A DNA stretch of 64,000 nucleotides from Schmidtea polychroa (lineage: Eukaryota), in contig CM097888.1 of assembly GCA_044892525.1 (NCBI GenBank), forward strand, positions 63,178,001 through 63,242,000. The letters are read 5' to 3'. Each line of letters starts with the position of its first letter. Within the stretch, counting starts at the first letter, position 1. This document shows, in pieces, positions 2,187-42,167 of this stretch. Both the position numbers and the translations under genes were made by a program. The notes beneath the pieces were generated by a model that was not told the DNA's origin, ran no database searches, and saw nothing but the letters and a program-made list of their open reading frames with translations.

Positions 2187-3476
2187 TTTGAGTTACATGT
2201 GAAAAAAACTTCATGATAATGAAAATAAACCATATGTTCAAAGAAAACAAAACAGGTCAAAAGTAAACAAAATTGTTCACTGATTGTATTTATTATAAGT
2301 CAATATTTTTAATTATTAACATGAATATTTCAAATTTTGATGTTTTGCGGAAAATGTGTATTTTAAATCCGATTAAAATAATGTCAATGAAAAATTAAAA
2401 TCTATCAATAAGAAACGATATAAAATATTTTTTTTAATAATAAGATATGAATTAGACAAAAGATGATGAACCTATGGTATACGTTTCAAAGGTGACACGT
2501 AGCAAACTTTGCTGATATGTGAACTATTTACGAATAATATCGAATGATAGCAATAATATATTCTAATTATTTTTTAAAAATTTTAGAATTTGTTCAATTT
2601 TAATTTTTATATTCAAGGGGCTTTTATATAAAAGGGCTTTCCCACGACAACACTTTCCAGTATATTATTTTCTGATCCACGCCGTCGCTAATCGCATTTC
2701 TTCTCATCATTAGGTGGATTCTAACTCTGGAAAGTTCATTATTGCTGTATATATTGATAGTGGTTTTAGAATGTTTTAAGTAATTACATTTATTTACAAA
2801 AGATTGCTTTTAAAATTTGAATAAATTTGCTTCAAATAATAAATAAAAGCAAAAGTTATCAGAATCCAGCAGCGAGAATTCTTAAGCTGATGAACTGAAG
2901 TGTGATATGATCAATGAAGGTAATAGAATGAATTCCTCTGAGAAACGCAATGATATTTATTTAACATCCCTAATTAAATATATCGATAATTATTCAAATA
3001 ATTTCTACTAGTTTCATTGTTTTTAAAGTAATTGCTAAACAATGCAAACATTTCGGTAATGAAGGATATATGATAGACGTATTAGAGATTTTGGAAAAGG
3101 GAAATACTTTTTTTAAAATAGAATATGGATCTGACTAGAAATATGACCTATATTTGTGTTATTGTATACTAAAATTTTCTAATTTATCGTAATAAAAATC
3201 TTCAGAATCGTGGAAATGTTCTTCAATCATTTTACTATCACAACATATTATGAATAATTTTTCACTTCATTCAAATTTTTATATTTGATTTAGTTTTTGT
3301 ATATTTTTGGTTTTGTTTGATTTAGCATAAGTTTATATTGTAGGTTGTTGACTATATATTTTTATTAATCGGCAAAAATTTTAACAAAAATAAAATGCAA
3401 CATTTGAATTTTGGAATGTATTAAAATTAAAACACACAATCACTTTAATCCAAATATTAAATAAATTTGTATTTGT

Positions 3477-4162
3477 TCATCAGGATCAATTAAAAATGTT
3501 CAAATTATTTATTCATAAAATCTGTATTCAACATTTGATTTTTTGAACTTATTTTTTCCGCAGTATATTATCACTAGTGTCTATTGGACTTAAGTAAAGA
3601 TTAATTATGTTAGTTTTGTGCATTTAAACAATTTATTTTTATGCAACTAAATGTTGTCGATGGATGACGTAGTGTATTGCTAACACCATGGATACATTTT
3701 GTTTTAAATAGCTTATAAATTCACGATAATGCCCAACCATGGCAGGTGCTCCACCTGTTGCTACAGATATTAGATTTGATAAAGGTATTGCTTTTTCCAT
3801 GAAGTAATCCTTCAAAACATGAAATATTGATTCGCCTTTAGTCTCGGTTGTCAAAGTTCTCCCAAAGAACAGTTCTTCGTGGATTTCTTGATCCACAATA
3901 AACGGATATATGCCACTTGAAATCGCCTTTTTTCTTCATTACGATTATAAGATTTTATAGTGTTATTGTTTTTAAAGCAAAAATTTGTAATTGATCATCA
4001 GGATCAATTAAAAATGTTCAAATTATTTATTCATAAAATCTGTATTCAACATTTGATTTTTTGAACTTATTTTTTCCGCAGTATATTATCACTAGTGTCT
4101 ATTGGACTTAAGTAAAGATTAATTATGTTAGTTTTGTGCATTTAAACAATTTATTTTTATGC
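3477..4162 (+). repeat. 168-bp direct repeat (3477-3644 and 3995-4162) flanking the duplicated hAT fragment
   Basis: The block tcatcaggatcaattaaaaatg...tttatgc occurs twice. Confidence 0.95.
3643..3967 (-). repeat. Copy of hAT transposase fragment 1862-2186 (325 bp, identical by eye)
   Basis: The sequence matches 1862-2186 at offset 1781, and the ORF track gives the same N-terminal translation for both. Confidence 0.95.
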
Positions 4163-4294: not shown

Positions 4295-7200
4295 GGTGCA
4301 CTCCTGGTTACAAAGAAATGTTTACTGGTGATGATTATGAATCTTGGATGTTTCGCGGAGGTTTAATTACTGAATTTCAGGTATTTAAATTATTTTATAA
4401 TATTCACTAAAATATAAAAAGGATTTTGAAGGAGTGTGAAAATGAAAAAATCTTTATTTTTCTTTATGGAACTTCATAAAGGTCTAGGAGTATAACGCTG
4501 GGCATCGGAGTTTAGAAATTGAAAAGAAATTTGCTCGGTTTCGGCAATTTTTGCAATGATTAAAATAGCATTAAATAAAATAATGTCATAATGCATAGAT
4601 AATGTTAAATATTTTTCTGATTTTAAGTCATTTTACAGTTAAAATTTTGGCACGAATTTTGAAATGAGATAGTTTTTGCTACCTTGAACATATTTTACTT
4701 TACGCCTCAGAAATTGTTAATAATAAACAATTTGGTAGTTCGTTCAATCGTGGCTTCCAAAACCCAGTGATCTTTCCACAATATGGTTCTTCAAAATTTT
4801 GAATCTTTATTTGGATTGAATTTGGAATGAAATAATCATTATTAGTGTCGTTTAATTGCGGGAACAATTGCCGTTATAAAATTAAGTGTTAATGTTTGAT
4901 GTAATGACACATGCCTAGAACACTAAAAAATAACCAGAATATGTGAAGTCCGTCTTTTTGATTTGTTGGTAATTCTAGTGTTAAGAAACACTGCCTATAT
5001 TGCTGAAATTCATTTAATATTATTATTTTAACGATCAATTTATTCAATATTCAATGAATTAATTCATAAATTTCTATTTATTATGCTTTTTGCTTTAAAT
5101 GATGTATTTCGCCATTAGTTGGAATTCCACGTTACCATTTTATTGTTCATGTAACAAAACAATCGCAAACATTAAAGATAAAATGCGATATAACGAATGT
5201 AATTAAAATGATTCTTTTTCATTTATTTAGTAGTATAAAAGCTTTTTCATTTTTTATATTGCTAAAATTAATTAATTTCAAAACCGCAAGATTTTTGCTA
5301 AATGCACTAAAAATAGGAGAATAAGTTTTCAGTACTTGAAAAATTTTCATGCACTTGACTTAAGATATAAGCTTTGGCCTTAATTTTAGCCTTTAATTTT
5401 GTTACTATTTCTGTTATTGGAATAAAATTTATTTAAGTAATTGAAATGAAAATTAGGGAAATTACTAATGAGAATATAATTTGACAAATTACGTCTTGGA
5501 TTTATAAATAGTTTTTAATATCATATTGTATATTTTATCTGTAGATTGTTTCAATTTCTTTAAAATCGAAAATATTCATCAGTGTAACAAAGAATTCGTC
5601 CATAGTAAATTTCAGACTTTTTAAGGTTATTAGAAACAGAAGATATTAGTAGGTAAAGGAATGAATTCAAGCTTCCTATGCTTTTATTTTAAGTTTTACT
5701 GAAGAAAAATTTATTGTTTACCTTTGAGTAAATTTTAAAATAAAATCTGTTTTTATAAATGTTTGGTACATTTGACATATATTTGATGTTTTTTTATGTT
5801 AGTTTTGTGAAATTATTCTTGGGTGTAATATTTCACAAGAAATTACCCGATGAATTTGTTATTGCAACAGTTTTTTCTTATTCTTCTGAGACTGGTTGGG
5901 ATTTTCAGATGTTTCTTTATAACTTTCATAGAAACGCATATTTTATATTCATTTAGTAATAGATTCATAACCCACACTAGTATTTGTTATAGTTTATGAG
6001 GTTCTTCCATATCCGATTGCATTATTTACATGAATAACAATTGCTATTTTCCAATATTATCTTAAAATTACATCTTTTCGTATAAGTTTTTTCCACTTCT
6101 AACTTTTAACAATTCCTTTTAAAGGTTAAATCCTGCAAATATTTGATAATGTTTTCCCGTATTAATCAATACTTTTTAATATTTTTATACACGGTTCTAT
6201 ATTTCAGAGGATGTTTCCGGTTGATAACGCATATGATCTTTTTCCAATAAGAGCTTCATTCATTCAATATTCTCCTGATTTCACAGTCAACGGTTTATTG
6301 TCAGAACCTACAGATAGTGAAAAATCATCCTCGTCTATTTCACATAATGGTTGTCATCTCACAAAAATCTCTCGACCGATTTATTCAAAGCCTTCTATGT
6401 TTAATGTTCGTCCATTCAGAGATGAAGATCGTCCATCTATTTATTCCTTGTGCTTTACTCTTGTTAACAATCGAGCTACTCTGTCAGCTAACGATTATAA
6501 ATGTTATTCAGAAGATATTTTCAATCTCCCGGGAGATCGGTAAATGCTTGTTTTGTTTAATTATTGAAATATTTTTCTTTTTAGATATGTTGGAGTTTTT
6601 CTGGATAATTTTCCTGAATTTTGTCTTGTTTTAGAAAATGAGGATTCAGTAATAGTCGGATACGCTGTCGCTTGCATGAATGTATTGGAATTTCAGAAAT
6701 ATCGTAACCAGGAATATTTACCGAAAATGAGAAATAAATATTCTAAATATTTTATTAATAACTCCATCACAGACATTGAAATGACAGACTCAACATACTC
6801 AGGTGCCGTCAGATCGGCTATTCAGGTAAGATTTACACTTATCGTATATCTTTTTTGATAATTAAATTTGCATATTATGTATTTGGATTTATAAAGTGTC
6901 TAAATTACAATTAACAATGAAACACTTCAGCTAATTTCTATTCACGGTCATACTATTGGAATCGAAGTAATGAAGTTGTACCTTTGGGTTTGTGTGAACA
7001 GAAAAAAATTTTGGTGGCTGTTATTTTGCTAATAATATCATTTAAATCCTTTTTTATGATTTTATTCTATTTATTTCTTCTAAACTATAGCTCAATAACA
7101 TATGTTGTTTTCCATATTAATAGAAATAAATAATAATCCACCTTGTAAATAACCTTGTTCTTTATAAGCTTTTATTATAACCTCATATAGTGGTACTTCG

Positions 7201-10200
7201 ACTTATGAAATTAATTCGTTCTGGAAGTCGTTTCGTAACGTGAAAATTTCGTAAGTAGAGCCTTTTTTTCCTTGTAAATGCCCTAATCGGTTCCAAGCCC
7301 CAAAATTATAAAAATACACGATTAACAACTTCTCCATCTCGTCGTTCAGTGCGGATATCCCTTTCGAAATGACAGAAGGACCTTTGGAAGTAGTCGTTGT
7401 TTTTATTTTAATATCGTACCTATTGTGGATGGATTACGGCCATATTCTTCGGCTAGATCAACCAAACGCATCCCTTTTTCGTACTTTTTTATTATCTCTA
7501 GCTTTGTTTGTATGGACAAAACATCTCTCTTCTTCTTCGCACCACTTTTTCCCATCACTTTCCTGGGATCCATAGTTAATACAAGTTTGACATAATTTGA
7601 CAAATTCAAATATTTAAACAAAATTAATTATTAAGTATTTTGAAGTTTTCACCTTTCGTAACCTGAAATTTATTTTGTAACCAGAGGTGATATTTTTCGT
7701 GTGTAGAGCCGTTTGTAAGTAGAGGTACCGCTGTATTAATTGTTTATGTATTTCGTTGTGATTTTCGTTACAAATTGATTAATCGTTGATTACAATGTCA
7801 AACGAGCTACTGATTCCCTTTTCTTACTACAGATCTCGATGCATTGACGGAACTCGATATGATCTATGTCTAATAGTGCGTCAATCATTAATTTCAAAAT
7901 CGTTTTCAGTTCACTGCATAACATTGGTCTGTCAGTTCACATACAGATACAGTTTAAACTCCTATAAACTTCACTCATCTGGTATTGCTATTTTGAATTA
8001 GTTGTTATTGCATATTATTTCAAATTTGTTATTGAATAATAATGATGTAATTTATAATCCCTATAAACATGTCTCTTCTGTGATCATAAGCCAATTTGGA
8101 CATGGCATGAAAATATAATATTTAAGATAAAATAGTTTTTCAAGATCAAGTTAAGTCCTCATCCGAGTAACAAAATCTCAAGAATTTCTTTGACAATTTG
8201 TGACTGCTTACATTAGAACCAATCAGAGTTTTAATAATTTCATAATCATTCATAGAAAATATCCAGAATTTGTGCTAATTATTATTTCTAATGTGGTCTG
8301 AAAAACTCTTGAGGGGTCTTTAGGTTAAAAAGGAAGTAAATAAATATTTGTGTTCATATTTAATCCTCTTAGCTTTAATTTTTACTTATGTTTACTTGTT
8401 ATATAGATTATTTATAAAATCACAATATCCTGACAGCTTTTAAATCTCTTATGAGCAATAATTTTTTAACTTTGTCGATTTTTTGCTTATTTTGTAATTT
8501 TAAATGTTGTATCACATATTTAAGTCCATTAATTTATTACAAAGCTAGGGTTCAACAATTGAGTGAGATATTTTACTCTAAAAACAATTTCATTGAATTA
8601 TCTTGTTGCAATAGGGCTGAAAATATTTTAAGTTGATTATAATATTCTTTTAAATCTTCAATGTTTAACGCCAAAACAAAGTGTGGTCAATAATACTTTT
8701 GTTTCTTCTAAAATTTTTCCTAGCAAATTTTTCCATTTGAAAATATACTTGTCAAATAATGTCATGGCGCTCTTAAAAATTAAAGATCAAATTTTGAAAG
8801 AGAATATAAGAAGTGAGTAGTATGTTGTGAGCTCGTACCACCAAAGGGAAATTTCCACACACCCCAAAAAACATACCCCCTGCGATGGTGGGTATGCTGA
8901 AATTTACCAACCACTAAAATCATTGTTACCTCCCTCCGCCAATAAACTTTTTTTCATTTTTTATTTCACAAATTAATTGCCCAATTTCAAAGATTTATAG
9001 ATCATGGATCTATAAATCTTTGAAATCCACCGAGATTTCTGTAAAATCCTAAAACAAAACAAATTTTCAGTATGCCTCCTATGTAGGGGTAAGTTTTAAG
9101 GGATGGGCAGCATTTTCCCATTTGTGTTACGGTCTCATAACATACTGCTGAATAGGCAAAGCTGCGGAAGGAAAAATTATTTTATTCTTTAACTTGGTAA
9201 GTACTATCTTATCGTATCTGTACATATTGCCTAAACTAGTATGCTCTTTACCCATTTTAGCTAATTAATATTTCCTTCCGTATAAATTGGAGCAGAGAAA
9301 GTTATGAAATTAAATGCTCGAAGGAAATTATACAAATTAAAAGTACTCAAAAGAAAGTTTAGAAGATTTTGAACAAATATAAATTTTATTCAAATTTACT
9401 AATCATGAGATTGTTAGGCAATTATTATTGTGCTTATCATTATTATTTATCTATTACCGAAATTTTTTAAATATCTTTTCAATTGATTAGTACTCCGGGA
9501 CGTATTTTTTGGTAATTTTATTACTAATAACCCTATATAAATGTCACTTGTTCAAACAAATTTAATGCCTAAAAGCCTTGTATTTTTCTTTAAGTCTTTC
9601 TGGTCCTGAAACGTTTAACTGTGTTATCCCTAATTGGATAAGTATTTTCTTGTACAAAACAAAATAACAATTGCGTTTTTCACATATCATTTTGTAGAAT
9701 ATGATCAATCAATTTCAACACGAACAATGTTCAATGCCTCAATCTGAAAACTCAGTTGTATTTTATTTTGATATGAAAGAATGTTACAAACCGAACGACC
9801 TTGACACTATTGACAGTTTAACTCGACGATTATTAATTTGTTTATTCTCAGCATTAAAGACTGCAGCTGCCGAAGTGAGTAATATTTTATGTTAATATCT
9901 ATAAAAAAATTATTACCGTGTTAAGAATTCTGATCAAACTCCAACACCAAATTATCCCACCTCTTTAATTGGCACTGGTAGTGCCTTAACTACTTCGTCA
10001 ATTGCTATTGTTTCTCAGGGTAGTCTCATTACTACTTCATCAGTCCCATTAGTAGCCATTGGACCAGTTCTTCAAGTGACGAATAAGGATAGAGCACCGG
10101 TACCTTCTTTGGTGAGTTTCATTTTACTAAAGATGGTGAAACATAAAAGGAAATTTAGCTAGATATTTTACTTATAATTTGTTAATAAAATATATAAGAT

Positions 10201-15399: not shown

Positions 15400-15780
15400 T
15401 CATTTAATCCACCATGGATATCAGGACATCATGGACGTTTCCAACGCAGATTTATTGAAAGTTATCATCGTCGATAATAACTGGAACATGACTTATTTTT
15501 ATTAATAATTAAATAAATGTTTCTCGCAATAGTTATTCATCTTGGCCTATTCATTTCTTGTGGTATGGTTCATTTTCGACAATTGGGAGGTTCATCTTTC
15601 GCTGCTTTAGTGTACTTTAATTTCATAATTGTGTAAGATTTCAGTACTTTTCCATATCCAGCAGATTTTGTAAATTTTGATCACATATTACGTTTTTTTC
15701 TGTACAAAATCAGTTTTTACCCAAACACCAGTTTGAAATTTTCTGATGCTCATCGTTTTTTAATGAACCTTTTGCTTCTA
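15400..15780 (-). mobile_element. Possible heavily degraded Tc1-like transposase fragment
   Basis: Only weak translated resemblance (KLKYTKAAKDEP; VIIDDDNF), with many stops. Confidence 0.3.
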
Positions 15781-17540
15781 GTTCCATTAAAATATTTTAA
15801 TCTTGCAGTTTAATTTTGTTTACCTAATGATTATTGTAACATTTTCCTGTAACTTCTAAATTCCTATTTAATTTAGTTAGCATAATTTCAATAAAACCCC
15901 AACATTGGAATGGCCTCTTCCGCATTTGAATTGGTAATAAAACCACAACATAGATGTTGAAAATACGTAAACAAAAGCTAGTAGCAAGAATTGAGGAAAC
16001 CTTAAAATACATCCTAACCAAAACAAAGATCCTTACAAGCAATCCACAAATGATTACCATTTCGTGTGATATTAATATATCATTTATTAATAACATGCAA
16101 CTGAATATCGAAACTTCAAAAGGCAAAACCGAATAGAATGAAGTTAAAAGCATCATGTTCAGTCATAAAAGCAACATGCTATATTATACTATTATACACG
16201 AAAATGTTCAAATTTCAAAAACTTTTTAAGTAGTCGTCAGAGATAAGTCAAAAATTGAGTTACTCTAAATGAAACAAAACGGATCGAATAGACAATTGAA
16301 TATATATTTATCTATAGTGAACTTTACAAAGTCTAGCTATATCACTTATTATAAAAGTATTAATATAAAATACAAAATACATATTAACACAAATCAAGAA
16401 ACTCAAGGCATCATGTGAAATGTACAATGAGCAAAGACAATAATATACCAATAAACACTATCGAAATCAAGCCTTGCAGAGATTAATACTGTTTTGAACA
16501 AATGGTTCAATTTGTTTACAAAATAAACTAAATCCACAATTTGATAAATTGATAAGTGACCATAAATGTTCCTTATTGATATGTCTCAACATTTCAACAA
16601 TCGCTCACTTGTTATTTATCCACAAAATACTACAAAGAAAATCGATTAATTAGTGCTCATCTCAGAATCTAAAGATGAAGAGTCAGAACGTCCCGACGAG
16701 GACGAATCGGATGATGAAACGGATGAGAGAGCTGCTTGATGATGCGTTTGTTGTTCTAAAAGTTAATAAATTAGAATTCAAAAATATTTTGGAACTTTAT
16801 AAGGCAACCGACAGCGCTGCGAACGAATACGACAAAAATATATTACAAAACGTATTACAGAAATCAATTAGTAAATAATATAAATATTTACCATTGACTT
16901 TGGGATTTGAATTTTCAGAATTGATAATTGTAGTAGGAGCTATCAATACACTGTGGACATATTTCTCCAGTTTTCTCAGCGTCTTCGTTTGCAATAGTTC
17001 AAAATCAACTTCTATTTCATCGGGAGCGACATAACTAAATGACGGCTCGTTTTCTTGAATAATTTCCACGACTCTCCTTAACTTTGCACCAAATAATTGA
17101 CTGATATTTAATTGAAGTTGCCTTTTCTCTTCATAAATCATCGGCTCATAAATTTCTTCTTCTAACATCATGAGTTATAATTGTGAAGTAAAATGTAAGT
17201 TATGTTTTGATGAATGATTAAAGTAGTGTTTAAATTTAAATTTCAAAACTAATAAAATAATTTATTATTGTTTAAAGCAAACAAAAATATATTAAAAATA
17301 ATTTACATGAAAATGTTATTCAACTTTTAAAATGCTCATAAAAACATTTGAAAATAAAGTTTATATGTTCTAAATAGTTAGTAAAATTTAATGGGATTAG
17401 TATTATATTCGGACTGACACATTATTTTGGTTAAAATAGATTTTAAGATAACAATCTGACAATGCAGCTTATCAAACGGATTCAAAATTAGGTATACATC
17501 ATGGTTAAGATTTGTAATCATGAAAGTCTGCGTAATTTAA
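15781..17540 (-). repeat. Segmental duplicate of the BET gene 3' end (homologous to about 25786-27822)
   Basis: 15836-16626 is essentially identical to 25847-26637. The remainder is diverged, lacks about 225 bp of 3' flank and has a 90-bp in-frame exon deletion (27131-27220). Confidence 0.95.
16646..17171 (-). CDS. Putative stand-alone ET (extra-terminal) domain protein, 129 aa in two exons, or a pseudogene
   Basis: Exons are 17171-16892 and 16755-16646. ATG ATG start, phase-1 GT-AG intron and TAA are all retained. The product is [19 protein letters not shown]...[23 protein letters not shown] plus a Ser-rich tail. Expression is unknown. Confidence 0.55.
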
Positions 17541-17754
17541 TAACCCCGAATAATGAGTCAATTAGTCAAACAATTGGAGTAAATCCAGTTTGAACACTAT
17601 AGTCTTAGTCATTAGTCGTTACTCCATACTGTAGAAGAGTATGGAGTAACGATTAATGACTAAGACTATAGTGTTCATACTGGATTTACTCCCATTGTTT
17701 GACTAATTGACTCATTATTCGGAGTTATTAAATTACGCAGACTTCCATGATTAC
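17514..17754. repeat. Long fold-back inverted repeat (117-bp arms, 7-nt loop, 5 mismatches)
   Basis: 17514-17630 is the reverse complement of 17638-17754; the loop is gtagaag. Confidence 0.95.
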
Positions 17755-17829: not shown

Positions 17830-19469
17830 TCGTCATCGACCTTCTCTATTCCTTTCCTAAAAGCATATATTCTTCATTTAACTCCACTTGGTAGTATGCA
17901 TTAACAAAATCAATTGAGCTAAAAAACGGATCCCTCCTAACAAATCTAACATTTCGTCTATGTTTGGCATTGAGAATGCCTGCCTCTCCGTTACTGCGTT
18001 CAGCTGCCTGAAATCCAATCATAGCCAAATATCCTTTTTCTCTTTTTTTCATACACAATTAACGGTGTGTTTCATTGGCAGTTGCATTTCCGTATAATCC
18101 CGTTTTCGTACAAATTTTGTATTGCTTCTTCAATTTTTGTTTCCAAATTTAATGGTTGACGATATGGTTTTATGTTTATCAGTTTGCTCTTGTAATTATC
18201 TTATGTTTTACCAAATGCGTGCGACGCATATCCAATTTATCCGCCATAAACACGTTTCCACTGTTCGTTATTATTTCTTTTAATTTGCTATTCTCATTAA
18301 TCTTTAGGTGTTCCAACGCTCGCGTCAATCTTTCTCCATCCTTTAATTGTCTGCCGAATTTTGCTTCAATGTTACAAATATAGTTCTTGTCTTTTTCACT
18401 AGATTCGATATCTTTCTTTTTTGCCAGCCTACATCCAAATGCTTCTTGTAATTCTACTCCTCCAATCACCTCTGGTGTCACTTTCTCCTCCACAATAAAT
18501 CTAACTTCCTTGGTAATATCTCCGATAGTTACTTTAACCTTTGTTCTTCCAATTGTCTCTTTCTTACTTTCGTTTTTACATCGTAACTTATCGTCGCTTC
18601 TCATAAATTGTTGTCCTCGTTACACTCATTACGTTTATTCGTGCTCCGATGTCTAATAAACAGTCGAAAATTTCCCCATTCATCATTACTGTTACACTAG
18701 GTTTTTCCTGTAGCTTGTTATACACAATTTCTATCTCCTGCCCCATTTCAATTGTTCCAATTCTTTTCACTTTCTCTTCAAACTTTTCTCTCCTTAGGAA
18801 CCTGTATACTTTCTCACTTACCCTTCCGACACTCTCCCACTTTTCTACCCCTTGAGGATATCCCATCCACTTTTCTGTGGTGGAGCCCCATTATTTGTGT
18901 ACGTCCTACTAAAATTATCTTCATTTGTCTCTATGCACGATTCCATTTCCTCTTCTTCCTCGATTCAATTAATCCGGCTGTATCTGTTTCCTATCGGTCT
19001 TTGTTTCTCTATCGTTTTCTTGTAACTCGACTTTATATAACTTTCTTCAGATCTATGACCATTTCTGTTGTATCTTTTACACTGTATTTCTAGACATAAC
19101 CTTCGTATATAACCTTTTTTCCCACAACCAAAACATATTGGCACTTTTTTATCTGGACAATTCCTACTTATATGTCCGCTTCTGTGACACGTCCAGCACT
19201 CTATCTTACTTCTTACTGGACAGTCTATTTTCATGTGACCTATTTTGTGGTATAGCCAGCACCCTGGTTCTTCTCGTCTCCTGCCTTCTTCGCTTTCATC
19301 TTCCTGCTTGTACTGTCCTCTTCTCTGTGAATCCTGATAGACCACTTTTGCGTAACTTTTCATAGCGTTTATCTGATCTCTCTCCTTTAGCATCGAAATA
19401 AATCTTGCATCTTCTAATGAACTTAACAAAATCTTTCGGTGATCGCGTCGGTGTTTACCGCTGCCACCA
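17830..19469 (-). mobile_element. Degenerate Ty3/Gypsy LTR retrotransposon (PBS, partial gag, protease, start of RT)
   Basis: A PBS-like TGGTGGCAGCGGT lies at 19469-19457. CCHC knuckles include CWTCHRSGHISRNC and CFGCGKKGYIRRLC. The protease-like motif is CLLDIGARINVMS and the RT motif FSSIDFVNAYYQV. Confidence 0.9.
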
Positions 19470-20260
19470 TATTAGGATTCTCATCCGTTAACACATTAAT
19501 ATTTGTTTGCAAATCACTAAATAATTCCATAAATTTTATTTAATAAATTATACGCTCAAAACTTATCTCTTCTTTTGTTCTTATTTAAACAAATTTCAAT
19601 CTTTCTTTAAAAATATTTTTCGATAAAAAATGTTTAAAATTTAACAAAATTTCTAATTAAACTTTTAAAATCTTTCATCTTCCTCAAAAGTATAAAAAGA
19701 GAGCTCAGAAATAGACATGCCGTCATTTAGTCGAAGAAAAAAAGAGAGTATTAGATTGAGCAAAAGGTGCAAATATTGACAAATTGGAATTTGATTGAAA
19801 TTAAATAAAATAATTCTGTGTTGGATTTCGACTTATTTGTTTGAATAAGAGAACACGAGAAGTCAGAGAGAGAACCGATTTTAAAAATAAAAACCCAACA
19901 AATGTATTTAATCATATTTGTTTTCACTTTGAAATACTAAGACTAATTAACAAGGAAATTGCAACCTTAATGTAAAACATATGCAAACTTTAACAAAGAC
20001 ATTCTATAAACAAACTTACAATATCGCTTTAAAGTGTTAATAATTAATTATCGATTTATTTATTGTTTAGAATGTTTAATCAACTTTTTGTTGGAAAACT
20101 AACTGAAATAAATTGTGTAAATATCCATGAGATATTAAACGCATTAAATCTAGAATGGACAGTTTCGAGTGAAGATTCAGGAATTGATGAAGAAAACTCT
20201 CAAGAAAATGATGAGGAAATCACTCCAGAAATTGATGAAATTGAAGAGGATGCTCTAGAT

Positions 20261-21409: not shown

Positions 21410-21651
21410 TAAATGTATTGATTTTTGTTTCATTGTTTTGAATAATATACCTTTGCGGCATGTTGAGTGTTATCAGTACCCTTGTGACCAATACCCACAG
21501 GGAGACAAAATATCTTGTCGGATAAAGTTTGACTATATAATAATAATAATAAATCCCACTCGCATAATAGCCCTTTGAAAGACCTTTAAAATAAATCATA
21601 GATCAATAAAATGGATGGACGTGAACTCTTAAAAATTAATGTTTTTAAATT

Positions 21652-21891
21652 TGATCTTGAATGAGTCATCCAATGACCTTGAATGAGTCATGGTCTTTGT
21701 TTAATTAACCTTGGAAAAAAACATTGACCTTGAAGGATTCATCCAATGACTATTAATGAGTCATGGCCTTTGTTTAAATGACATTGGAAATAAACATTGA
21801 CCTTGGATGAGTCATTGTCTTTGTCTAAATGACCTTGAATGAGTCCTTGCTTAAATGAACTTTTTAAAAATTTCTTCTCGGGGGTAGGGGT
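21652..21891. repeat. TGACCTT/ATGAGTCAT motif array (two ~73-bp higher-order units plus a partial) ending in GGGGGTAGGGG
   Basis: Four exact TGACCTT and four exact ATGAGTCAT were counted by eye. Confidence 0.85.
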
Positions 21892-24800: not shown

Positions 24801-25780
24801 ATTTTAGTTTTCCTTTTTCGAACCTTTGAAGGGGGATCCCAACTGTAGTTAGGTATTTTTTCTTATATACCATCAGGTAATTTGATAAAATGAAATACTT
24901 TAATAAAAATCCCTGTCTTCATTTTCAATAAAATCCTTATTATTTTATTTGTGACTACTTGGGAAAGTATATGTGAGTAGTATCACTATAAAATTTTCTG
25001 TCTAAAATGTACACGGCGAAGGTGCTTGAGGCTAGAGTTCCTCAGGGGGCTGCCTTGATAGGACTGGATCCAATTTCTGATCACCATATAGTGTCCAGCC
25101 ACCCAGCAGTCCATATTATTCGGCCAACCCAACCTTCGACCAAGTCCTCTGTGCAAGTAATTCCAGCAACATTGTTAAAATCGTCGGTTAAGGAACGAAA
25201 ACACCTCACCAAGGCCCGTTTCTTGCGTTAACAGAGGGAAAAACGCAGTGGATATATGAACCAACTATATTGATCGTGATTCCGGCTCCAACACTTTATC
25301 ATTTCTTCACTGCCAATTTGGATGATCTGGACTTTTATACACAGTCAGCTTCTCGAATCTAATTATTGTAGTTTAGTTTGGTGTCCAATTATCAATAAAT
25401 GTTTACTTTCTGTTTTTTCATTTGTTTCTACTACTTCAATTTAGTAGTTGAAAGTTGGGAGAAATGGAATTATAAAAATGCGTCGTTGGTAGAATACTAG
25501 AAATCAAGTTCTTCTCTCCACTTTTTCAGATGTTAGCTAAACTCGACTAAATCCTTTCGCCGATTCCGCCATCGGTCAGTAGTTTATGATATAATACCTT
25601 CTAACGGCATTGTTAATCGTTGATGAGTATATGGGTCGAGCAGTAGGATTAAGCCAGCTCGCCTTTGCTTTACCGCCTCTGTATACAGCACCAACGCGTC
25701 TCATTCAATCGACTTGCTTAAAGCAATTTTACCACCAGGATAGAATACTTGACCCCTAGCGAGGACATCATTTTTTTTTA
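21900..25780. mobile_element. Mixed degraded retroelement debris
   Basis: Scattered motifs include YLVDTSADV (protease-like, -, about 22450) and VPQGAALIG and PISDHHIV (non-LTR RT/APE-like, +, 25007-25231). There is no continuous ORF. Confidence 0.35.
23338..23379 (-). ncRNA. Minimal type I hammerhead ribozyme (Penelope-like-element type)
   Basis: The minus strand reads ATAGTA-CTGATGA-GAGC-CAAAA-GCTC-GAAA-CTAG-TC-TACTAT. It has an intact core, 6-bp stem I, 4-bp stem II, palindromic minimal stem III and a GUC cleavage triplet. Confidence 0.85.
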
Positions 25781-26881
25781 CTTCCAGTTCCCTTAAAATA
25801 TATTAATCTTGCAGCTTAACTTAATTTTGTTTACCTAATGATTATAGTAACATTTTCCTGTAACTTCTAAATTCCTATTTAATTTAGTTAGCATAATTTC
25901 AATAAAACCCCAACATTGGAATGGCCTCTTCCGCATTTGAATTGGTAATAAAACCACAACATAGATGTTGAAAATACGTAAACAAAAGCTAGTAGCAAGA
26001 ATTGAGGAAACCTTAAAATACATCCTAACCAAAACAAAGATCCTTACAAGCAATCCACAAATGATTACCATTTCGTGTGATATTAATATATCATTTATTA
26101 ATAACATGCAACTGAATATCGAAACTTCAAAAGGCAAAACCGAATAGAATGAAGTTAAAAGCATCATGTTCAGTCATAAAAGCAACATGCTATATTATAC
26201 TATTATACACGAAAATGTTCAAATTTCAAAAACTTTTTAAGTAGTCGTCAGAGATAAGTCAAAAATTGAGTTACTCTAAATGAAACAAAACGGATCGAAT
26301 AGACAATTGAATATATATTTATCTATAGTGAACTTTACAAAGTCTAGCTATATCACTTATTATAAAAGTATTAATATAAAATACAAAATACATATTAACA
26401 CAAATCAAGAAACTCAAGGCATCATGTGAAATGTACAATGAGCAAAGACAATAATATACCAATAAACACTATCGAAATCAAGCCTTGCAGAGATTAATAC
26501 TGTTTTGAACAAATGGTTCAATTTGTTTACAAAATAAACTAAATCCACAATTTGATAAATTGATAAGTGACCATAAATGTTCCTTATTGATATGTCTCAA
26601 CATTTCAACAATCGCTCACTTGTTATTTATCCACAAAGCACGATTTTTAAGAAATATATGGAAAATTAATTAATAATTTAATTCAAATTTATTACATATA
26701 AACTCATCAAATAATAGCTCAAAGTCAAAAAAGAGAAAATTTGCTTGAAACGAGTATATAATAACTTGCCAGTTACCATTATGCAAGTAATTGAAAAAAA
26801 TTCGGGAAATGAAATCAAAAATAAATATATTTCAATGTACATTATAATAAGAATTAGAAAAAATACTACAAATAAAATCGA

Positions 26882-29800
26882 TTAACTAATGCTCTTCTCA
26901 GAATTTAAAGATGAAGAGTCAGAACGTCCCGACGAGGACGAATCGGATGATGAAACGGATGAGAGAGCTGCTTGATGATGCGTTTGTTGTTCTAAAAGTT
27001 AATAAATTAGAATTCGAAAATATTTTGGAACTTTATAAGGCAACCGACAGCGCTGCGAACGAATACGACAAAAAAATATATTACAAAAATTATTACAGAA
27101 ATCAATTAGTAAATAATATAAATATTTACCTTTAATGCTATATGTGCTGTTATCGATGTTTGACACTGTGTATTCATCGTATGACTTTTTGTTTTTCATC
27201 GCCACTGGGACGACTTTTGGATTGACTTTGGGATTTGATTTTTTAGAATTGATAATTTTAGTAGGAACTATCAATACACTGTTGACATATTTCTCCAGTT
27301 TTCTCAGCGTCTTCGTTTGCAATATTTCAAAATCAACTTCCATTTCATCGGGATCTGAGTCTCTCAATGTCGGCTCGTTTTCTTGAATAATTTCCACGAC
27401 TCTCCCCAACTTATCACTTAATAATTGATTGATATTTAATCTAAGTTGCCTTTTCTCTTCATAAATCATCGGCTCATAAATTTCTTCCTCTAAAATCATG
27501 AGTTATAATTGTGAAGTAGAATGTAAGTTATGTTTTGATGAATGATTAAAGTAGTTTATAAATTAAAAAAAAATAATTTAATATTGTTAAAGCTCAGAAA
27601 AATGTTATTCAACGTTCTAAAGATTTTAATATTTTCCATTTTTTATCTGTTCTAGATAGGTAGTGAAATTTAATGGGGTTAATATTATATTTGGGCTGAC
27701 ACATTTTATTTTGGTTATAGATTTGATGATATCAATCTGACAATGCAACGGATTAAAAATTAGGTATACATCATGGTTAAGATTTGTAATCATGGAAGTC
27801 TGCGTAATTTAATGACTGTGAATCCCCGGGATGGAGTTTAAATTGAGAAAATTATATTTAATTATAATCACTAGTAGGCCAATGGTTAATAAGGCCATTA
27901 TTAATATATTAAACCGTTTGCTGATTGTATACCCAGTCGATTGTACACATCTGAATACACAGAAACAAACTAATATTCCCAAAATAATATCCCCTAAATA
28001 AAGATAATTGAAAAACTTAATGTCATTTTAGACAAAAATCCCTGGGTGTCATTTTGTATTTAAAAAGAAAATGGATTGCCATTTCTGAAACCCGGGGCTG
28101 AATAAATGATTATCACAAAATATAAATAAATAGCCCCATCCTCATTCTAATAGAAGAGTCCTTCATATCTCAATGGCGAACAAATGATCAATAGAAAAAA
28201 ATTTCACCTTCTGATTTACATTTAATATTGGAAATTGCAACATTTTCATTGAGAAATAATCCCTTTGAAGATTTGACAGGAGCTGTGACCTTTTTACAAC
28301 TGTCAGGAACGCTAAATAATAATTTCGATGAGATTAAACAACTAAGGATAATACAAACTTTTTTCTTGGATTTATTTTGCTAGAACTGACCGACGATTTT
28401 TTCCCACTTGCACTTTGAGGAGTGTTTATCGTTTCGTTCAGTTTGTTTTTCGGTGGATGGATAATCCGCTTACTCTTCCTAGAATTGGAAATAGTTGACG
28501 TAGACGATGATAAAATACTTTCTGACATGTTAGACATCATCGATCCAGCATCGCAAAATTCCCCAATGTTGTTCGTGTCGGCCGGACAGGTTTTATCCCC
28601 GGTTGAATTGAATGTCAAAAGAGATTTCTCTTTCAATTTCTGATGCAATTCGTCGATTTCTGCTCCCTGAATCGTCATCAACTCTTGGACTTTTCTCGAT
28701 TCTTCCATTAATTCGTCTTGTAACGATTCGATTTTGAATAATCTTTGAATAATTTCCTTTTTGTCAAGACTATCACTGAATTGAGATCGGTCATTCGTAA
28801 AGTCTTTTGGTTTATGTATTTCCTGAGGCGATGATTTCAAAACAGATTCTTCTTTGGATTTTATTTGGTTTGTAAATGGAGTTCTTTCGTTCATTTCTGG
28901 CTTGAATGATGGCTGCATCGTTTCAACTGTTTTGTACGCTGAAAATGTTTTTGTGCATAATTCTTTAAAAATCTCATTGAGTGTCTTAGCAATTTTTGCA
29001 TATTCATGAGATTCTCCGTTATAAATCATACAATTATTAAATACTAATTCAACATCTTCAATAAATTTTTCTTTATTTTCATAAAGGTTTGCTTCTAATT
29101 TAGATTTAATCGTTGTAAGATCCATTGGCTTTTTGATTATTTCAAAATAATTATGAAGATTATATTTCTTTACGTCGACTGGTAAAAGAAACAGAGTATT
29201 TAATTTCTAAAAAATATATTTATTTTAACATTAATTTACAAAACCTTTTATAATTAAAAACTCATTCAAATTTAAATTGAAACACTCACTCGATATTTAG
29301 ATGACATTATATCTTTAAGAATATTCAGACATTTCGTTAAATCGGTATTTAAAAATGATGGTATATCTTTAACGATTTTGCTGGATTCCATTCTGGGTAA
29401 TTTGCATGATAATTTTTCCGGGTCTTCCTCAAGTTTCCTTTTACCAAGCAAAGAATTAGTTGATAAATCAACCAATTCCTTGGTTTTTGTAGGCATCGAA
29501 ATACTAATGCTTTGATTACTAATTGGTGTTGAAACTCGAGAATTTAGACTGGGTGCATAATTATCTAAAGCCATGTGTTTGATTTTTTCCTTGAATATAC
29601 TATCTAATTTTAACGCCATAAAAATAACGTCTTCGCCTGGTTGGTTGAATAAGTAGCAATTACAAAATACTCGATTCACATCATCAATGCATTCATATAT
29701 TGATGAATATTGTTTATTTCTCAATTTGCTTTTAACTAATGAAAAATCCATGGGATGTCTAATAATCTTTGGATAATCCTAAAAAAAATTTTAAATTATT

Positions 29801-29951
29801 TAAGATATATAGATTTTACTGGAATATTAAGGGCTACAATATCAACAGCTTTAGTAAATGGCCATGCAAATTTGTGCTTCAAAAGACTTGGTAAAACAGT
29901 TTTGTTTATGTACTCTAAACTGTTGGTAGGCGGTTTGCTGGATTTTGTCAT
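26882..29951 (-). CDS. BET-family protein (BD1-BD2-coiled coil-ET-Ser-rich tail; BRD2/3/4/T, fs(1)h homologue), about 680 aa
   Basis: Exons 29951-29820, 29778-29290, 29206-28359, 28311-28208, 27489-27130 and 26991-26882 sum to 2043 nt with consistent phases. BD1 reads [13 protein letters not shown]...PMDF...CYLFN, BD2 reads PVD...KPMDL...CMIYN, and ET reads [14 protein letters not shown]...DEMEVDFE. Confidence 0.93.
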
Positions 29952-30399: not shown

Positions 30400-33300
30400 A
30401 ATCAAAAACACGACAAAGGAGAAAAAATAAGATCAAAATTAAGAAACACAAAAATAAAGTAAAATAATGACAAAAGCATGAAGAATTGCACATAACCAAC
30501 ACTAATAAGAGGTTTGTGATCAGTGAAGACTGTGAATTGTCTAGCTTCTAAAATGTGTCCAAAAAGCTTAACAGCTAGAAAAATAGCAAGTAATTCTCTA
30601 TCGAATGCACTGTACTATGACTCTGCCAATGAAAATTTTCTAGAGAAAAATTCTATTGGGAGTGAAACATTGTCTTTAATTTGATTAAGGACTGCACCTT
30701 TGTTCAGTTCCGAAAGAGGTGCCGTTATGTGTGATGCGTTTTTATGAATCTGTGACAGAAATTGACGATGCCCAAAAACCTACGTAGTTGTGTTACGGTG
30801 GTGGGTAATGGGAAGTTGTGGATTACGTCAAGTCGTTCAGGAAAAGGTTTATAACCTGTAGATGAGAGTATGTGACCAAGGAATTTGACGCGTTTTTGAA
30901 AAAATTTAAATTTATTTACATTGATCTGTAAGTTATAACGGTTCCATATATCAAGAACAGAGTGTAGATCTTTGTTGTGGGTGTCGCGGTCGGGTGATGC
31001 TACAATTATATCGTCGAGGTATGCAAAAGCGTGGTGGACGTCCCGGAAAATTGTGTCCATGAAGTGTTGTAAAGACTGAGCTGCATTCCTTAGGCCGAAA
31101 GGCATGAACATGTATTCGAAATTTTTAAATGGTGTAATTACAGCGGTTTTGGGAACGTCATCGATATGTACAGGAAACTGATGGTAGGCTTTCGAGAGGT
31201 CAATAGTTGAAAATATGGTGGATTGTGAAAAGCGGGTTATTAAATCTTTGATAAGTGGCATAGGGTATGCTTGATTGAGTTTACGGTAGTCGTCGCACAG
31301 CCTGAGTGAACCGTCTTTCTTGGTGACTACGTGTATTGGTGACGCCCATGTAGATGAAGAACGGCGTATAATGCCTACAGTCTTTAGACTGGTGAATTCG
31401 GCTTTAACTGCGTCGATTTTAATGGGTCAGAGGGGTTTGGCTCGGTTGTGTTATGGTATGCAAATGTAGGAATATAATGAGTCGATAGAGTTGTCGGTTG
31501 TATGATAGGGGATTTTGTGATGAGTTTTGGGTATGTGGTTATGATTGTCTCGATTATGTCATGCATTGGCTCTGAAATAGGCGAATGTTGGATATCTGAC
31601 ATGTGTTTATTGCGTTCTATCGTGTCAGTAGATTGGATAAAGCTGAGTTAGGTCCTTGGAGATGTCTGTGTAGAGATTGCTGTTCTGTTTGGTGATACAT
31701 TTGTGGATATAGGATTGAGATGTCTGTTTATAGTGAATAGTCGTCGATTTTTGCCGTCTATCATGAGGGATTGTTCGCTGAGGAAATCGGAGCCTAGTAT
31801 TGGATGACTTCTGTCTGCTATGTGGAAATTGTGAGTGAAAATTGAGTCGGTAGCTTGAATGAAAGTTTTTACGTTCCAAAAAATTGTATCGGTGTGCCGT
31901 TGGCTGCCAATACGGTGAAAGAATATTTGAGATCTGAAGTTATATTGGTTAGGAGGATCGAAAATGATGATCTGGAGTCGACAAGGAAGTAAATTGATGA
32001 GCTGGAATTGAAAGTTGCTTCAACTGTAAAGATGATGTTGATCGCAAAAGCACCGCCTGAAAATCGAGGGTTTACAGACGGTGAAGTTAAATTTTTTTTG
32101 GGGGGGGTGTAATTGGAGTAGTTTTTGTTGTATTGTGGTTTGTTTGAGTAATGATTCACAAAGGTACAGCCTGGAAGCAATTCTGTGCATGTAACCCGAA
32201 GTGATTGTGCTTAATGCAGATGGGAATAACTCTTAAGGTTAACGGGGGGTTTAGCCAAGAACATCCTTATGTGACATGTTCTAGCGTCCGATTTAAACTT
32301 TTTGTGAAAAAAACAAGTCAGAGGTGGAAAAGAGTTTGACCTGTCAGTTCTTAGGGAGTATGGAATTTTTCGAGGGGGGTTAGTTAACGTGGCGACAGCT
32401 TTTGTCAAAGAGGATATCTGTTCTTGAAGCGAGAGGTTGGAGGCGGATGAGATAGATGTGGGTGTGTTACGAATAGGGGGTCTGGTGATCAGTTTATCAG
32501 CGATTTTTGCCAGGTGGAAGGAAGGAGGTTTGGACGTGATGTAGGATCGCTGTTAAAGAATAGTGACATAGGATAGCAGTGTTCATTGATAGGCTGGTAT
32601 GAGCGTTTTCTAGTTCTCGTACGAGTTGGGATAAAAATGATAATGGTGCCTGGCCACCGCATGGAGTGGTTTTGATAGTTTCTCAATTGATGAAGTGTTT
32701 GTGGGTGAGTATTTCTTATGTATCGCTATTTTGATGGACTCGTAAGGGTTTTCAGAGTCTAATTCGTCAGCAATTTGTGAAATTAATTCTGACATTAACA
32801 ATAGGTCTTGTTTAGATTTGGGGTTGGACTTTGTGCGCGCCTCAAAAATGCGGAACCAAGATGATGGGGTGCCGTTTGAGTCTAAAAATTTTAATTGGGT
32901 TCGACCGATGTTTGTTTTGAAAAAAACGTGAGACGATTGATTGTTTTGAGATTGAAAAATGGTTGATGATGGCCACTCCGTTGTTTAAGGTGAAAACTCG
33001 TTTTCGTCTATTAAAAATGTTTCGATAGGTCTTTCACAAAATTTTGGGTTACACGGACTTAGAAAAAGATGGTAGTGTGAGGGACAGTAATGTTGGGCGT
33101 TTTCATATTAGTTAAAGTTGCGTTTTTGGGCTTGGGAGATTGGTGGAAAAAGAAAAATATATCAACATAATAATTGGACATTTTTAATACATTATATATA
33201 AATTTAATGAAGGAAAATGTATTAATAAGGACAATTATAAATGTAATTTTTACTGTTTTTAAAGATAGAAGAACATTTGCCTTTGTCACTTCTGACACCA

Positions 33301-33500
33301 ATTTTAGAGACATACTATTAATTTGAACAAAGAATTTATTGCAATTAATATTGTTGAAAATCTTGAACATCATCAGAGATATAATTGTGCATAAGATGAA
33401 GGTTTCTGTCTCCTGTATTTTTGACATATTTGATCTATTGATTTTGACTCGATTTGATGATTCTTCAACTTCTTCAACTTCAGTGACTTCGTTAGACATG
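30400..33500 (-). mobile_element. Degenerate Ty3/Gypsy retrotransposon (gag, protease, RT, RNase H)
   Basis: RT motifs are TIDLSKAYHQ, MPFGLRNAAQ and AYLDDI. RNase H motifs are LRRFLGIVNF and AFDRELLAIF. The protease-like motif is FLVDSRSSFS, and gag-like WFRIFEA is present. Many frameshifts. Confidence 0.9.
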
Positions 33501-33993
33501 TTTGAATTTGATGATTTTTTAAATTCAATTTGATGATGATTTTCGAAAAAGTGAAAAGTAAAGGATTATTTAAACAATTGTTATTATTTTTTTATTTTTT
33601 ATTAATTTAATAATATATTTTTAGTTCAATTATTAAATTGAAAAAAGTGCTAGTCAGAGGCACTGTGTCACAATATAATGACCTTATATAATAAATAAAT
33701 TTAATATAACAATCAAAGAAATGAATTTAGTAAGCCAAGTAAAATGGATGAATTTAGGTTAATAATGAGCAAAGTAAACTAAGTGAATTGGGGGTATGAT
33801 GGGCAAATTATGGTGATTACCGAATTTATATGATCGTACGAATAATGATAGCCCTAATAGTAATAAGGATTCAATACTGAATCTCAATACCTGAGCTTAA
33901 ATACCTCAACCACGCACTATTGTGATTTAGAACCAAGAAATCTGGAAAACGTACCAACATTGATCACTCGATGGGTATCAAGCAGCGAAATAG

Positions 33994-36900: not shown

Positions 36901-38366
36901 CGGTGGAGGTGAAAATCGGAAAATCAACCAACCCACTCGATCAGCGGGTCGAACCAAAATGAAGCGGCCTAGTCGATTTGCGCGAAACCGATTAAAGGCG
37001 CTCCAACTGGCATCTCAGGCACCTAGTGAGGCATATTGCCACCTAGATGCTACGAAATACACGGGGTTTCGAGACGAATAGCCAATCCAATAGCACCAAT
37101 CAATTAACGGAATGTCCTATATTTTTACATTAATTAGTATTAGATCAAATAAAGTAGTGTGCTTAGTTTTTCATTTTAAATACTTCATGTTGTCCTTTAT
37201 TTTACACTGGGTCATGAAGACCAGGATCACCTGACTCGTGAATGGTGCGAATTACTGCGTGAGTAGAAACCGTGTGAAAGTATGGGGAAGGTTGCGAGAC
37301 ATATGGAGTACATTTTATTCTTGGTTGCGCTAGAAACAGCATGACAGAGTAAAATGTTTGATTACTTGTAACACACAACTACATTACAGTCTACACTTAT
37401 TTTATTGACAAATGTGAATCATATGAAATTTAATGATTTTGTCTACAAGACGAGTATAAACTTACAAACAAAAATTAAAGAATTCCAATGTTAAATATTT
37501 TTTCATTTTACTAAATACTTCTCTAGGAAATTATACAGACTACTTGAGGTCCCGGCTTGGTGATTCGGTAACAGTCCACTTAAAGTACATTGCAGTCTAC
37601 ACATACTTTATTGAAAAATGTGAATCATATGAAATTTAATGATTGTGTCTACAAGATCCGTGCCCTAAGGTTGCAAATCAGAAACTTGGAGATGCAACTA
37701 CATCAGAGGGATTTAGATCACGATGCAGCCGGTGGAGGTGAAAATCGGAAAATCAACCAACCCACTCGATCAGCGGGTCGAACCAAAATGAAGCGGCCTA
37801 GTCGATTTGCGCGAAACCGATTAAAGGCGCTCCAACTGGCATCTCAGGCACCTAGTGAGGCATATTGCCACCTAGATGCTACGAAATACACGGGGTTTCG
37901 AGACGAATAGCCAATCCAATAGCACCAATCAATTAACGGAATGTCCTATATTTTTACATTAATTAGTATTAGATCAAATAAAGTAGTGTGCTTAGTTTTT
38001 CATTTTAAATACTTCATGTTGTCCTTTATTTTACACTGGGTCATGAAGACCAGGATCACCTGACTCGTGAATGGTGCGAATTACTGCGTGAGTAGAAACC
38101 GTGTGAAAGTATGGGGAAGGTTGCGAGACATATGGAGTACATTTTATTCTTGGTTGCGCTAGAAACAGCATGACAGAGTAAAATGTTTGATTACTTGTAA
38201 CACACAACTACATTACAGTCTACACTTATTTTATTGACAAATGTGAATCATATGAAATTTAATGATTTTGTCTACAAGACGAGTATAAACTTACAAACAA
38301 AAATTAAAGAATTCCAATGTTAAATATTTTTTCATTTTACTAAATACTTCTCTAGGAAATTATACA
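33994..38366 (+). repeat. Tandem array of 829-bp units (about 5.3 copies, nearly identical)
   Basis: Identical ORFs recur at 34274, 35103, 35932, 36761 and 37590 (period 829). The only variable site I saw among full units is gaatt[g/a]ctg. Confidence 0.98.
34721..35423 (+). CDS. Putative three-exon coding segment within one 829-bp unit (unknown coiled-coil/basic protein); repeats with the array
   Basis: Exon A ends at 34771 (GTGAGT), exon B is 35040-35080 and exon C is 35169-35423 (TAG). Phases are compatible and AATAAA lies about 65 nt after the stop. I found no in-frame ATG or acceptor for exon A. Confidence 0.5.

Positions 38367-38788: not shown

Positions 38789-42167
<3,379 letters not shown>

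Follow-up and report, generated by a model that had tools for sequence, protein, structure and literature searches.

A partial downstream duplicate of a BET gene in Schmidtea polychroa with an open reading frame for a variant ET domain

The BET gene and its partial duplicate

A stretch of 64,000 nucleotides (nt) of Schmidtea polychroa DNA (assembly GCA_044892525.1, contig CM097888.1, positions 63,178,001 to 63,242,000; hereafter the window, in whose numbering all positions are given unless stated) was analysed for a two-exon copy of the 3' end of a BET gene. The window is AT-rich eukaryotic DNA with a G+C content of about 30%. The parent BET gene occupies 26882..29951 on the minus strand; its six exons encode 680 amino acids (aa) with two bromodomains and an ET domain, and no internal stop is present. 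The copy lies downstream on the same strand. Its frame from the ATG at 17171 encodes a product of 129 aa that contains the ET domain only and, having no bromodomains in the same polypeptide, does not qualify as a member of the BET family; bromodomains would be joined to it only by splicing of its exons to the upstream BET gene.

A spliced orthologue, P0003 (UniParc UPI0006018B07), 88% identical to the parent over the BD2 exon, guided the model of the parent gene. The exons are 29951-29820, 29778-29290, 29206-28359, 28311-28208, 27489-27130 and 26991-26882 (all minus strand), separated by GT-AG introns; the gene's known introns span 41-718 nt. The ET-coding exon, 27489-27130, is followed by an intron of 138 nt and by the last exon, 26991-26882. 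Its acceptor was placed at tttag/AG because the phase-1 donor at 28208 fits no other acceptor, and this junction was fixed by P0003, which reads ...KCKSEEEE(V/I)YEPM across it. Elsewhere, residues ~256-270 of P0003 seem to read through a 47-nt intron that is removed in the window model (28358-28312; LVLLSVHHCVYLLLS), probably because the relative was misannotated there.

The duplicated block of the copy was delimited to 15776..17550 and the source block to 25780..27823, both on the minus strand, in direct orientation and 10.0 kb apart. Homology between them covers about 320 nt of the former upstream intron, both exons, the intervening intron and about 870 nt past the stop codon. A tblastn search of the window with the 129-aa product returned only one other locus, the parent's 27499-26882 on the same strand. 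Exons, introns and flanks are collinear and the breakpoints defined, as in a segmental, DNA-level partial duplicate. A processed retrocopy was considered and rejected, since the copy keeps its intron and its homology extends into the upstream intron and the 3' flank.

Exon 1 of the copy (16892..17171, minus, 280 nt) is the ET-coding exon. It opens with two ATG codons, at 17171 and 17168, retains the acceptor AG at 17163-17162 and is followed by a donor GT at 16891-16890. The GT..AG intron at 16756..16891 (minus) is 136 nt long, compared with 138 nt in the parent, and contains three mismatches. Exon 2 (16646..16755, minus) encodes a Ser-rich C-terminal tail and ends in a TAA stop. Copy codons 10-73 (16953..17144, minus) encode the ET (NET) domain. 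The Pfam BET/ET model PF17035 matches residues 10-73 with E=6.7e-22 and a score of 78.9 bits against a cut-off of 24.5, over profile positions 1-63 of 64.

The copy's ATG is present in the parent too, at 27499, where it sits in an intron just before the acceptor tttag/AG. The initiation codon of the copy is a retained piece of intron with a chance in-frame ATG and no retained start codon; a T-to-G change has turned it into ATGATG, and a stop stands two codons upstream. An earlier note on this DNA had described a duplicate of the last two BET exons that keeps its ATG, both splice sites, intron phase and stop. The splice sites, phase and stop are indeed kept; the ATG is former intron. The note had also reported a single exon indel, an in-frame deletion of exactly 90 nt, and this was confirmed (370 versus 280 nt, parent 27131-27220). 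The difference is a deletion in the copy, because the outgroup sequence P0001 contains the 90-nt segment, and it stops one base before the donor, so that the phase-1 junction is kept.

A further stretch of about 225 nt of the parent (~26638-26860), starting 20 nt past the stop, is missing from the copy. In the parent this stretch holds the polyadenylation signals AATAAA at 26693 and ATTAAA at 26682. At the 5' breakpoint of the copy stands a palindrome of 241 bp (17514..17754) with 117-nt arms that are 96% complementary and a 7-nt spacer. Only its outer ~38 nt are found in the parent intron (27786-27823), and it may be a foldback element or one resembling a miniature inverted-repeat transposable element, or else a by-product of the duplication. 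Beyond the palindrome, as seen from the copy, lies a fragment of a long terminal repeat (LTR) retroelement on the same strand. No LTR pair was found between the copy and parent blocks. A tandem array at 21651-21847 (73-nt unit, 2.3 copies, 84% matches) also lies between the two blocks.

Mosaic divergence and its polarity

Divergence between copy and parent was uneven along the block. The alignable part of the upstream intron showed 15/207 mismatches (7.2%), together with two unalignable stretches and five indel events; exon 1 showed 27/280 (9.6%), the copy intron 3/136 (2.2%), exon 2 4/110 (3.6%) and the 3' flank 3/846 (0.35%), the last being 99.6% identical to the parent. A maximum chi-square scan placed a breakpoint at ~16910, beside the 90-nt deletion, with a value that was reached in 0/2000 permutations. 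On its 5' side 42/468 positions were mismatched (~9%), and on its 3' side 13/1135 (1.1%). The simplest reading would be that the 3' part of an older duplicate was re-homogenised by gene conversion, with the 90-nt deletion acting as a barrier. Alternatively, DNA synthesis around the 5' breakpoint may have been error-prone in a burst when the duplication occurred. Because the neighbouring non-coding DNA shares the high divergence, the divergence of exon 1 is by itself no sign of selection.

All four differences in exon 2 fall within the last seven codons (16646-16666) and are non-synonymous, one of them having occurred on the parent's branch. This cluster adjoins the 225-nt deletion and stands amid an otherwise near-identical stretch; it may consist of mutations associated with the indel or mark a local target of selection.

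The close relatives found in the databases were all parent-like, namely P0003 and two sequences from Logan run SRR33002330, P0001 and P0151. The nearest named BET protein was that of the flatworm Macrostomum lignano, with a match confined to the ET domain. The contig of P0001 has a G+C content of 46% and its DNA is 71% identical, which makes it a more distant outgroup than P0003. Homologues carrying the changes of the copy were found neither in an exhaustive search of 1.84 billion representatives nor in a length-limited search. An exact look-up of the unspliced copy reading frame in public assemblies had nothing on record, and an Rfam scan of the window gave zero matches, with no spliced-leader or other RNA clue.

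When P0003 was used to polarise the changes, exon 1 contained 19 copy-specific and 0 parent-specific residues, and exon 2 three copy-specific and one parent-specific. Altogether, 22/23 polarised amino-acid changes were on the copy's branch (exact p=6e-6). Such asymmetry shows, by comparison with the relatives' sequences, released or changed selection in the copy, without saying which of the two. Synonymous changes were also polarised with L001, giving 15 on the copy branch, two on the parent branch and five ambiguous, a count that is unreliable at 71% identity.

The ET cores of the parent, P0003 and P0001 are almost identical, and both outgroups carry the parent's residue at every changed ET-core position of the copy, including the S, the M and the segment TLRDSD. 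In the copy, G28 and I53 are the majority residue in 97% and 100%, respectively, of 87 other ET domains, while the parent has S and M. The earlier note had taken the G of LPG and the I of DEIE for canonical residues that the copy retained and the full gene had lost. This does not hold: since both outgroups share the parent's states, G28, S44 and I53 were re-acquired in the copy.

Predicted fold, place of the changes and constraint

The copy aligned with the solved BRD4 and BRD3 ET domains without gaps, at ~60% identity and with PDB E-values of 1e-19 to 1e-21. AlphaFold2, run on a 90-sequence alignment, predicted helices at residues 13-24, 29-41 and 62-77, with a mean predicted local distance difference test score (pLDDT) of 72.5 and about 85 in the helices. 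The best Foldseek matches of this model were BRD4 and BRD3 ET domains, free or with NSD3, CHD4 or a gammaretroviral integrase tail (template modelling scores 0.66-0.79), and the root-mean-square deviation from BRD4/BRD3 ET was about 2 A. The copy is thus predicted to fold as a canonical three-helix ET domain with a long alpha2-alpha3 loop, in which DEIEVDFE supplies the strand of alternating acidic and hydrophobic residues.

For the BRD3 ET domain, helices have been assigned to residues 574-586, 590-602 and 624-637, a cleft to L592, V596, I599, I616 and F618, and the pairing strand to 613-EIEID-617 (bioRxiv 10.1101/2020.09.21.306696). The copy is as the parent at the cleft hydrophobics (equivalents of BRD3 L592, V596, I599 and F618) and in the acidic strand. 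The single change in this strand, M53I, restores the family's invariant residue.

Replacements were concentrated at two places. The first is the kink between alpha1 and alpha2 together with the residue after the cleft leucine, where LLSDKLG has become LFGAKLR. The second is the first half (N-terminal part) of the alpha2-alpha3 loop, where TLRDSD has become SFSYVA. This second cluster occupies codons 44-49 (17025..17042, minus), just before DEIEVDFE; 9/18 nt differ in it, a density seen in 12/20000 random placements, and no template for it was found in the window within three mismatches. Such a cluster could have come from one complex mutational event, or selection could have acted on a very small target there. 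In a simulation study, ET positions 35/36 were proposed to set the peptide preference of BRD3 versus BRD4 (PMC12642612). In the numbering of that study, these positions are R and D in the parent and S and Y in the copy. ET domains bind short amphipathic basic peptides of partner proteins, and the altered loop and kink residues of the copy adjoin the predicted groove. It may reasonably be inferred that the ligand preference of the copy's ET domain would be altered.

Of the nucleotide differences between the coding sequences, 27 are in exon 1 and four in exon 2. In the 93 aligned codons of exon 1, 20 were replaced and two were changed silently only; over all 129 codons the counts were 24 and two. 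The ratio dN/dS (omega) was obtained from Nei-Gojobori counts with binomial tests. After multi-hit codons were resolved, exon 1 held 4.8 synonymous changes in 54.5 sites and 22.2 non-synonymous changes in 224.5 sites, giving an omega of 1.12, and omega for all codons was 1.46. An omega of 0.5 was rejected over all codons (p=0.019) and only marginally for exon 1 (p=0.08). The earlier note's count of 20 replaced against two silent-only codons was reproduced on recounting, and so were its six consecutive changes from TLRDSD to SFSYVA before the acidic segment. Its claim of an excess of changes near the ligand-binding loop was fair as to their placement, with the raw 20:2 overstating the matter at an omega of 1.12. 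The paralogue dN/dS, at 1.12 and 1.46, was not different from 1 and lends no support to such an excess.

Constraint was then measured with a hidden Markov model built from 151 ET domains of the exhaustive search, with the two close relatives left out. The parent scored 109.4 bits and the copy 101.0 bits. Parent sequences given 27 random substitutions and kept free of stops scored 80.6 +/- 7.9 bits, and 1/1089 reached the copy's score. In a rotation null, which preserves the clustering of changes along the exon, 1/909 was as good. When the changed positions were kept and only the bases were randomised, 204/2795 (7%) were as good; the unusual feature is therefore the placement of the changes and not the new residues. 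With the curated Pfam model, the parent scored 80.1 bits and the copy 78.9.

Among columns that are at least 90% conserved in the 87 other ET domains and canonical in the parent, 3/38 were changed in the copy, compared with 12/30 of the remaining columns (Fisher p=0.0025). The chance of staying free of stops under random substitution was 0.16-0.22. From the five indel events in the upstream 379 nt, about 3.7 would be expected in the exon; it has one, which is a multiple of three, and the chance of no frame-breaking exon indel was ~0.085. Selection has, somewhat probably, kept the ET module. The earlier note's view of independent evolution instead of simple decay agrees with the intact frame, the predicted ET fold and the sparing of conserved columns.

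Interpretation, rival explanations and significance

The explanation favoured here begins with a young, lineage-specific duplication at the DNA level, which would have copied about 2 kb of the BET 3' end to a place 10 kb downstream on the same strand. The 5' half of the copy would then have diverged by about 9%, while the frame, splice sites, ET core, hydrophobic cleft and DEIEVDFE strand were kept and replacements piled up in the kink and the loop. On the strength of the fold prediction and the conservation profile, we lean, with modest confidence, towards the view that selection has maintained the copy as a variant ET module for peptide binding, its ligand preference having shifted.

We infer that the copy would be translated by one of two routes. 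By route (a), a stand-alone, bromodomain-less protein of 129 aa would be made from the ATG at 17171 or 17168, or one of about 119 aa from Met11, and would compete with, or partly replace, the full BET protein at ET partners. The ATG at 17168 has a purine at -3. By route (b), the copy's exons would serve as alternative last exons of the upstream BET gene and supply it with a variant ET domain. When the exon-4 donor at 28208 is joined to the acceptor at 17162, the result is open and in frame over 1953 nt, encoding 650 aa with no internal stop, and this route would need neither a new promoter nor a new start codon. The two routes fit equally well, and each is given about half of the explanation's weight.

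Several observations weigh against this explanation. An omega of 1 was not rejected for exon 1 or for all codons. The copy-branch dN exceeded the per-branch intron rate (p=0.002), with p=0.07 if the 18-nt cluster is counted as one event. Part of the divergence is regional, exon 1 standing at 9.6% beside 7.2% in the alignable upstream intron. Mismatches and indels thin out away from the 5' breakpoint, and a mutational burst could give such a gradient. Three near-invariant residues are lost in the copy (N24S, G32R and L45F), and the numbers behind the constraint are small. As to route (a), the first ATG has a weak context and is former intron, and no promoter could be identified in the former intron, the palindrome or the retroelement fragment. 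Route (b) needs an intron of 11,046 nt, where the gene's other introns span 41-718 nt, and the skipping of the parent's terminal exons and poly(A) sites. The parent's proximal polyadenylation signals are deleted from the copy, and its next AATAAA is at 16088, 558 nt past the stop. Finally, no transcript, protein or orthologue of the copy was present in the collections searched, a silence that says little, as the species itself is absent from them.

Many of these points would be equally expected of a silent relic, that is, a promoter-less partial duplicate, unexpressed and drifting, whose frame and conservation profile come from its youth, patchy conversion and luck. Drift would yield an omega like the 1.1-1.5 measured, exon 1 and the alignable upstream intron have diverged to similar degrees (9.6% and 7.2%), and the mosaic is conversion-like, with a sharp breakpoint at ~16910 (0/2000 permutations). 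The 18-nt cluster resembles one complex mutation, and the copy lacks the proximal poly(A) signals, takes its start codon from former intron and has no database relatives. Such a relic would not, however, be expected to spare conserved ET columns as the copy does (1/1089, 1/909 and Fisher p=0.0025): there is no reason for conversion tracts to track the conservation of the domain, and blocks of changes are already provided for in the rotation null. Nor has it acquired a stop (p 0.16-0.22) or a frame-breaking indel (p ~0.085) beside indel-rich non-coding DNA. A frozen parent with a drifting copy also predicts an omega of about 0.5, which is disfavoured over the 129 codons (p=0.019) and, less so, in exon 1 (p=0.08). 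A silent relic is therefore regarded as possible but doubtful. That the copy arose in assembly, as a misplaced haplotype or a collapsed repeat, might be suspected from a 3' flank that is 99.6% identical over ~850 nt and from the runs of N at 50-52 kb of the window. The copy nevertheless has its own 90-nt and 225-nt deletions, a 5' half diverged by 9%, unique flanks and a palindrome at its edge, and the runs of N are 33 kb away; an artefact is scarcely credible.

A sharp change in divergence would also be produced if the diverged 5' half, including the regained G, S and I, had been converted from another BET-like gene. Three of the copy's changes reach the family majority, and 7/10 columns with a majority of at least 90% from which the parent deviates are changed in the copy. 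This move toward the majority is not significant, since 7% of random-base simulations score as well, and LFGAKLR and SFSYVA are non-canonical too. There is also no third ET sequence in the window and none like the copy in the databases, so a third paralogue appears improbable. The earlier note had proposed that a chromatin-untethered, ET-only protein could be a decoy or dominant negative for ET ligands, possibly retroelement or viral integrases; as a rival explanation, this was considered together with positive selection. Binding of ET domains to host motifs and to a gammaretroviral integrase tail, by way of the cleft and the acidic strand, is established (PDB 2n3k, 2ncz and 6bgg; bioRxiv 10.1101/2020.09.21.306696), altered loop positions have been proposed to tune peptide choice (PMC12642612), and the window contains three LTR-retroelement fragments. 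Omega is not, however, significantly above 1, as positive selection would require; no integrase match was obtained among the scanned open reading frames of the three fragments. Ty3/Gypsy-type integrases are not known to use ET domains. In yeast, very few genes responded to over-expression of the ET domain alone, and the loss of BET function was made good in part (PMC13373324), which speaks against a dominant negative; by analogy, a free ET domain may be a weak agonist or modulator. The proposed decoy is accordingly rated very improbable, and an integrase-directed function can only be conjectured.

Comparison with known systems places the predicted module among the BET-family ET domains (PDB 2jns, 2ncz, 2n3k, 6bgg, 7jmy and 6cui), with which the copy shares the predicted fold, the cleft hydrophobics and DEIEVDFE. 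Unlike the solved BRD4, BRD3 and BRD2 domains, it stands in a frame without bromodomains. Its kink reads LFGAKLR where nearly all ET domains have an LPGEKLG-type sequence, and the first half of its loop is hydrophobic and aromatic (SFSYVA) where the family's is polar or charged. No characterised natural gene encoding an ET domain alone was found in the literature. Short ET-only database entries were tried as precedents and rejected: the ten that were traced are exon-sized reading frames of short Logan/ENA contigs or cluster with partial BRD4. A separate entry, P0002 (Acipenser sinensis, flagged UNVERIFIED_CONTAM by its source), is a BET-like sequence of 655 aa with two identical tandem ET segments, which would reflect a very recent duplication of the ET exon or else a fault in the assembly.

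The closest counterpart is an annotated 242-aa hypothetical protein of Meloidogyne hapla (A0A1I8BMA1 / KAL7069606.1; P0004), which has two ET modules and no bromodomain. A BET gene encoding 1186 aa, whose ET exons gave rise to it by local duplication, precedes it on the same strand at a distance of 570 nt. Within the M. hapla locus L002 (CM118432.1, 2155012-2167874), the BET gene is marked at 3285-3589, the ET-only gene at 6001-6863 and the start of the next gene at 7230-7289 (locus numbering). The two modules are 86-92% identical to the ET domain of their own parent, an intron interrupts each of them where the parent ET has its own, and their changes likewise fall in the kink and the loop. 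The first ~20 codons of the ET-only gene are 75% identical to the start of the next gene (ANAPC8-like, L002 7230). This similarity suggests a chimeric origin of its 5' end, which would have provided a plausible start; the window copy has no such donor. The M. hapla protein is 47% identical to the window copy, belongs to another phylum, is of independent origin and is likewise uncharacterised. On the evidence of the two loci, duplication of ET exons beside BET genes recurs; as working genes both are only putative. The wider proposition, that BET genes repeatedly spawn adjacent ET-only genes and that the copy is an expressed small ET protein, given its own peptide partners by the remodelled kink and loop and without acetyl-lysine reading, is considered unlikely. 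If true, an ET-only protein would tune BET-dependent transcription or intercept ET-binding proteins.

For route (b), a precedent is offered by alternative or mutually exclusive exons, which can arise by tandem exon duplication. The copy is like such exons in strand, downstream place, retained acceptor and intron phase. It differs from them in that it includes the terminal exon and 3' flank and stands 10 kb off, behind a retroelement fragment. Zebrafish Brd2b-S is a truncated BET isoform proposed as an antagonist (PMC8629005); it is a splice variant with bromodomain 1 and without the ET domain, the reverse of the copy's content, and has no separate locus.

The remaining features of the window are as follows. 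The three LTR-retroelement fragments lie at ~17860-19471, 30405-33565 and 45220-48224, all on the minus strand, and comprise at least three, at least seven and at least seven open-reading-frame pieces, respectively, some of which match zinc knuckle, reverse transcriptase or RNase H domains in Pfam. The fragment at 30405-33565, in which reverse transcriptase and a portion of RNase H are matched, comes to within about 450 nt, on the upstream side, of the BET start codon (29951), so that the promoter region of the parent borders a truncated element. An open frame of 108 aa occurs five times at exact 829-nt spacing on the plus strand (34268-37907; starts 34268, 35097, 35926, 36755 and 37584). This long-period tandem array is above the detection limit of the tandem-repeat search (maximum period 500) and has no Pfam match. 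Exons of an MCM-family replicative helicase lie at 38923-41806 on the minus strand (MCM P-loop domain, E=4e-55). The open frames at 1414-2154 and 3642-3935 (minus) are identical over their first 60 residues, as a repeated element would be, and the longer has no Pfam match. Three runs of N, of 227-240 bases, are located at 50373-50599, 50660-50899 and 51861-52097.

The ET domain forms the end of BET proteins that recruits partners. In yeast it has been argued to carry most of the BET transcriptional role (PMC13373324). As the copy illustrates, a raw count of replaced against silent codons can mislead. Should the copy be silent, it would be a tidy partial duplicate with mosaic divergence. As an alternative C-terminus of the BET protein, it would be a case of isoform-specific ET specificity. 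If expressed, it would amount to a natural experiment on the ET domain without bromodomains and on the loop and kink residues that set its choice of ligand.

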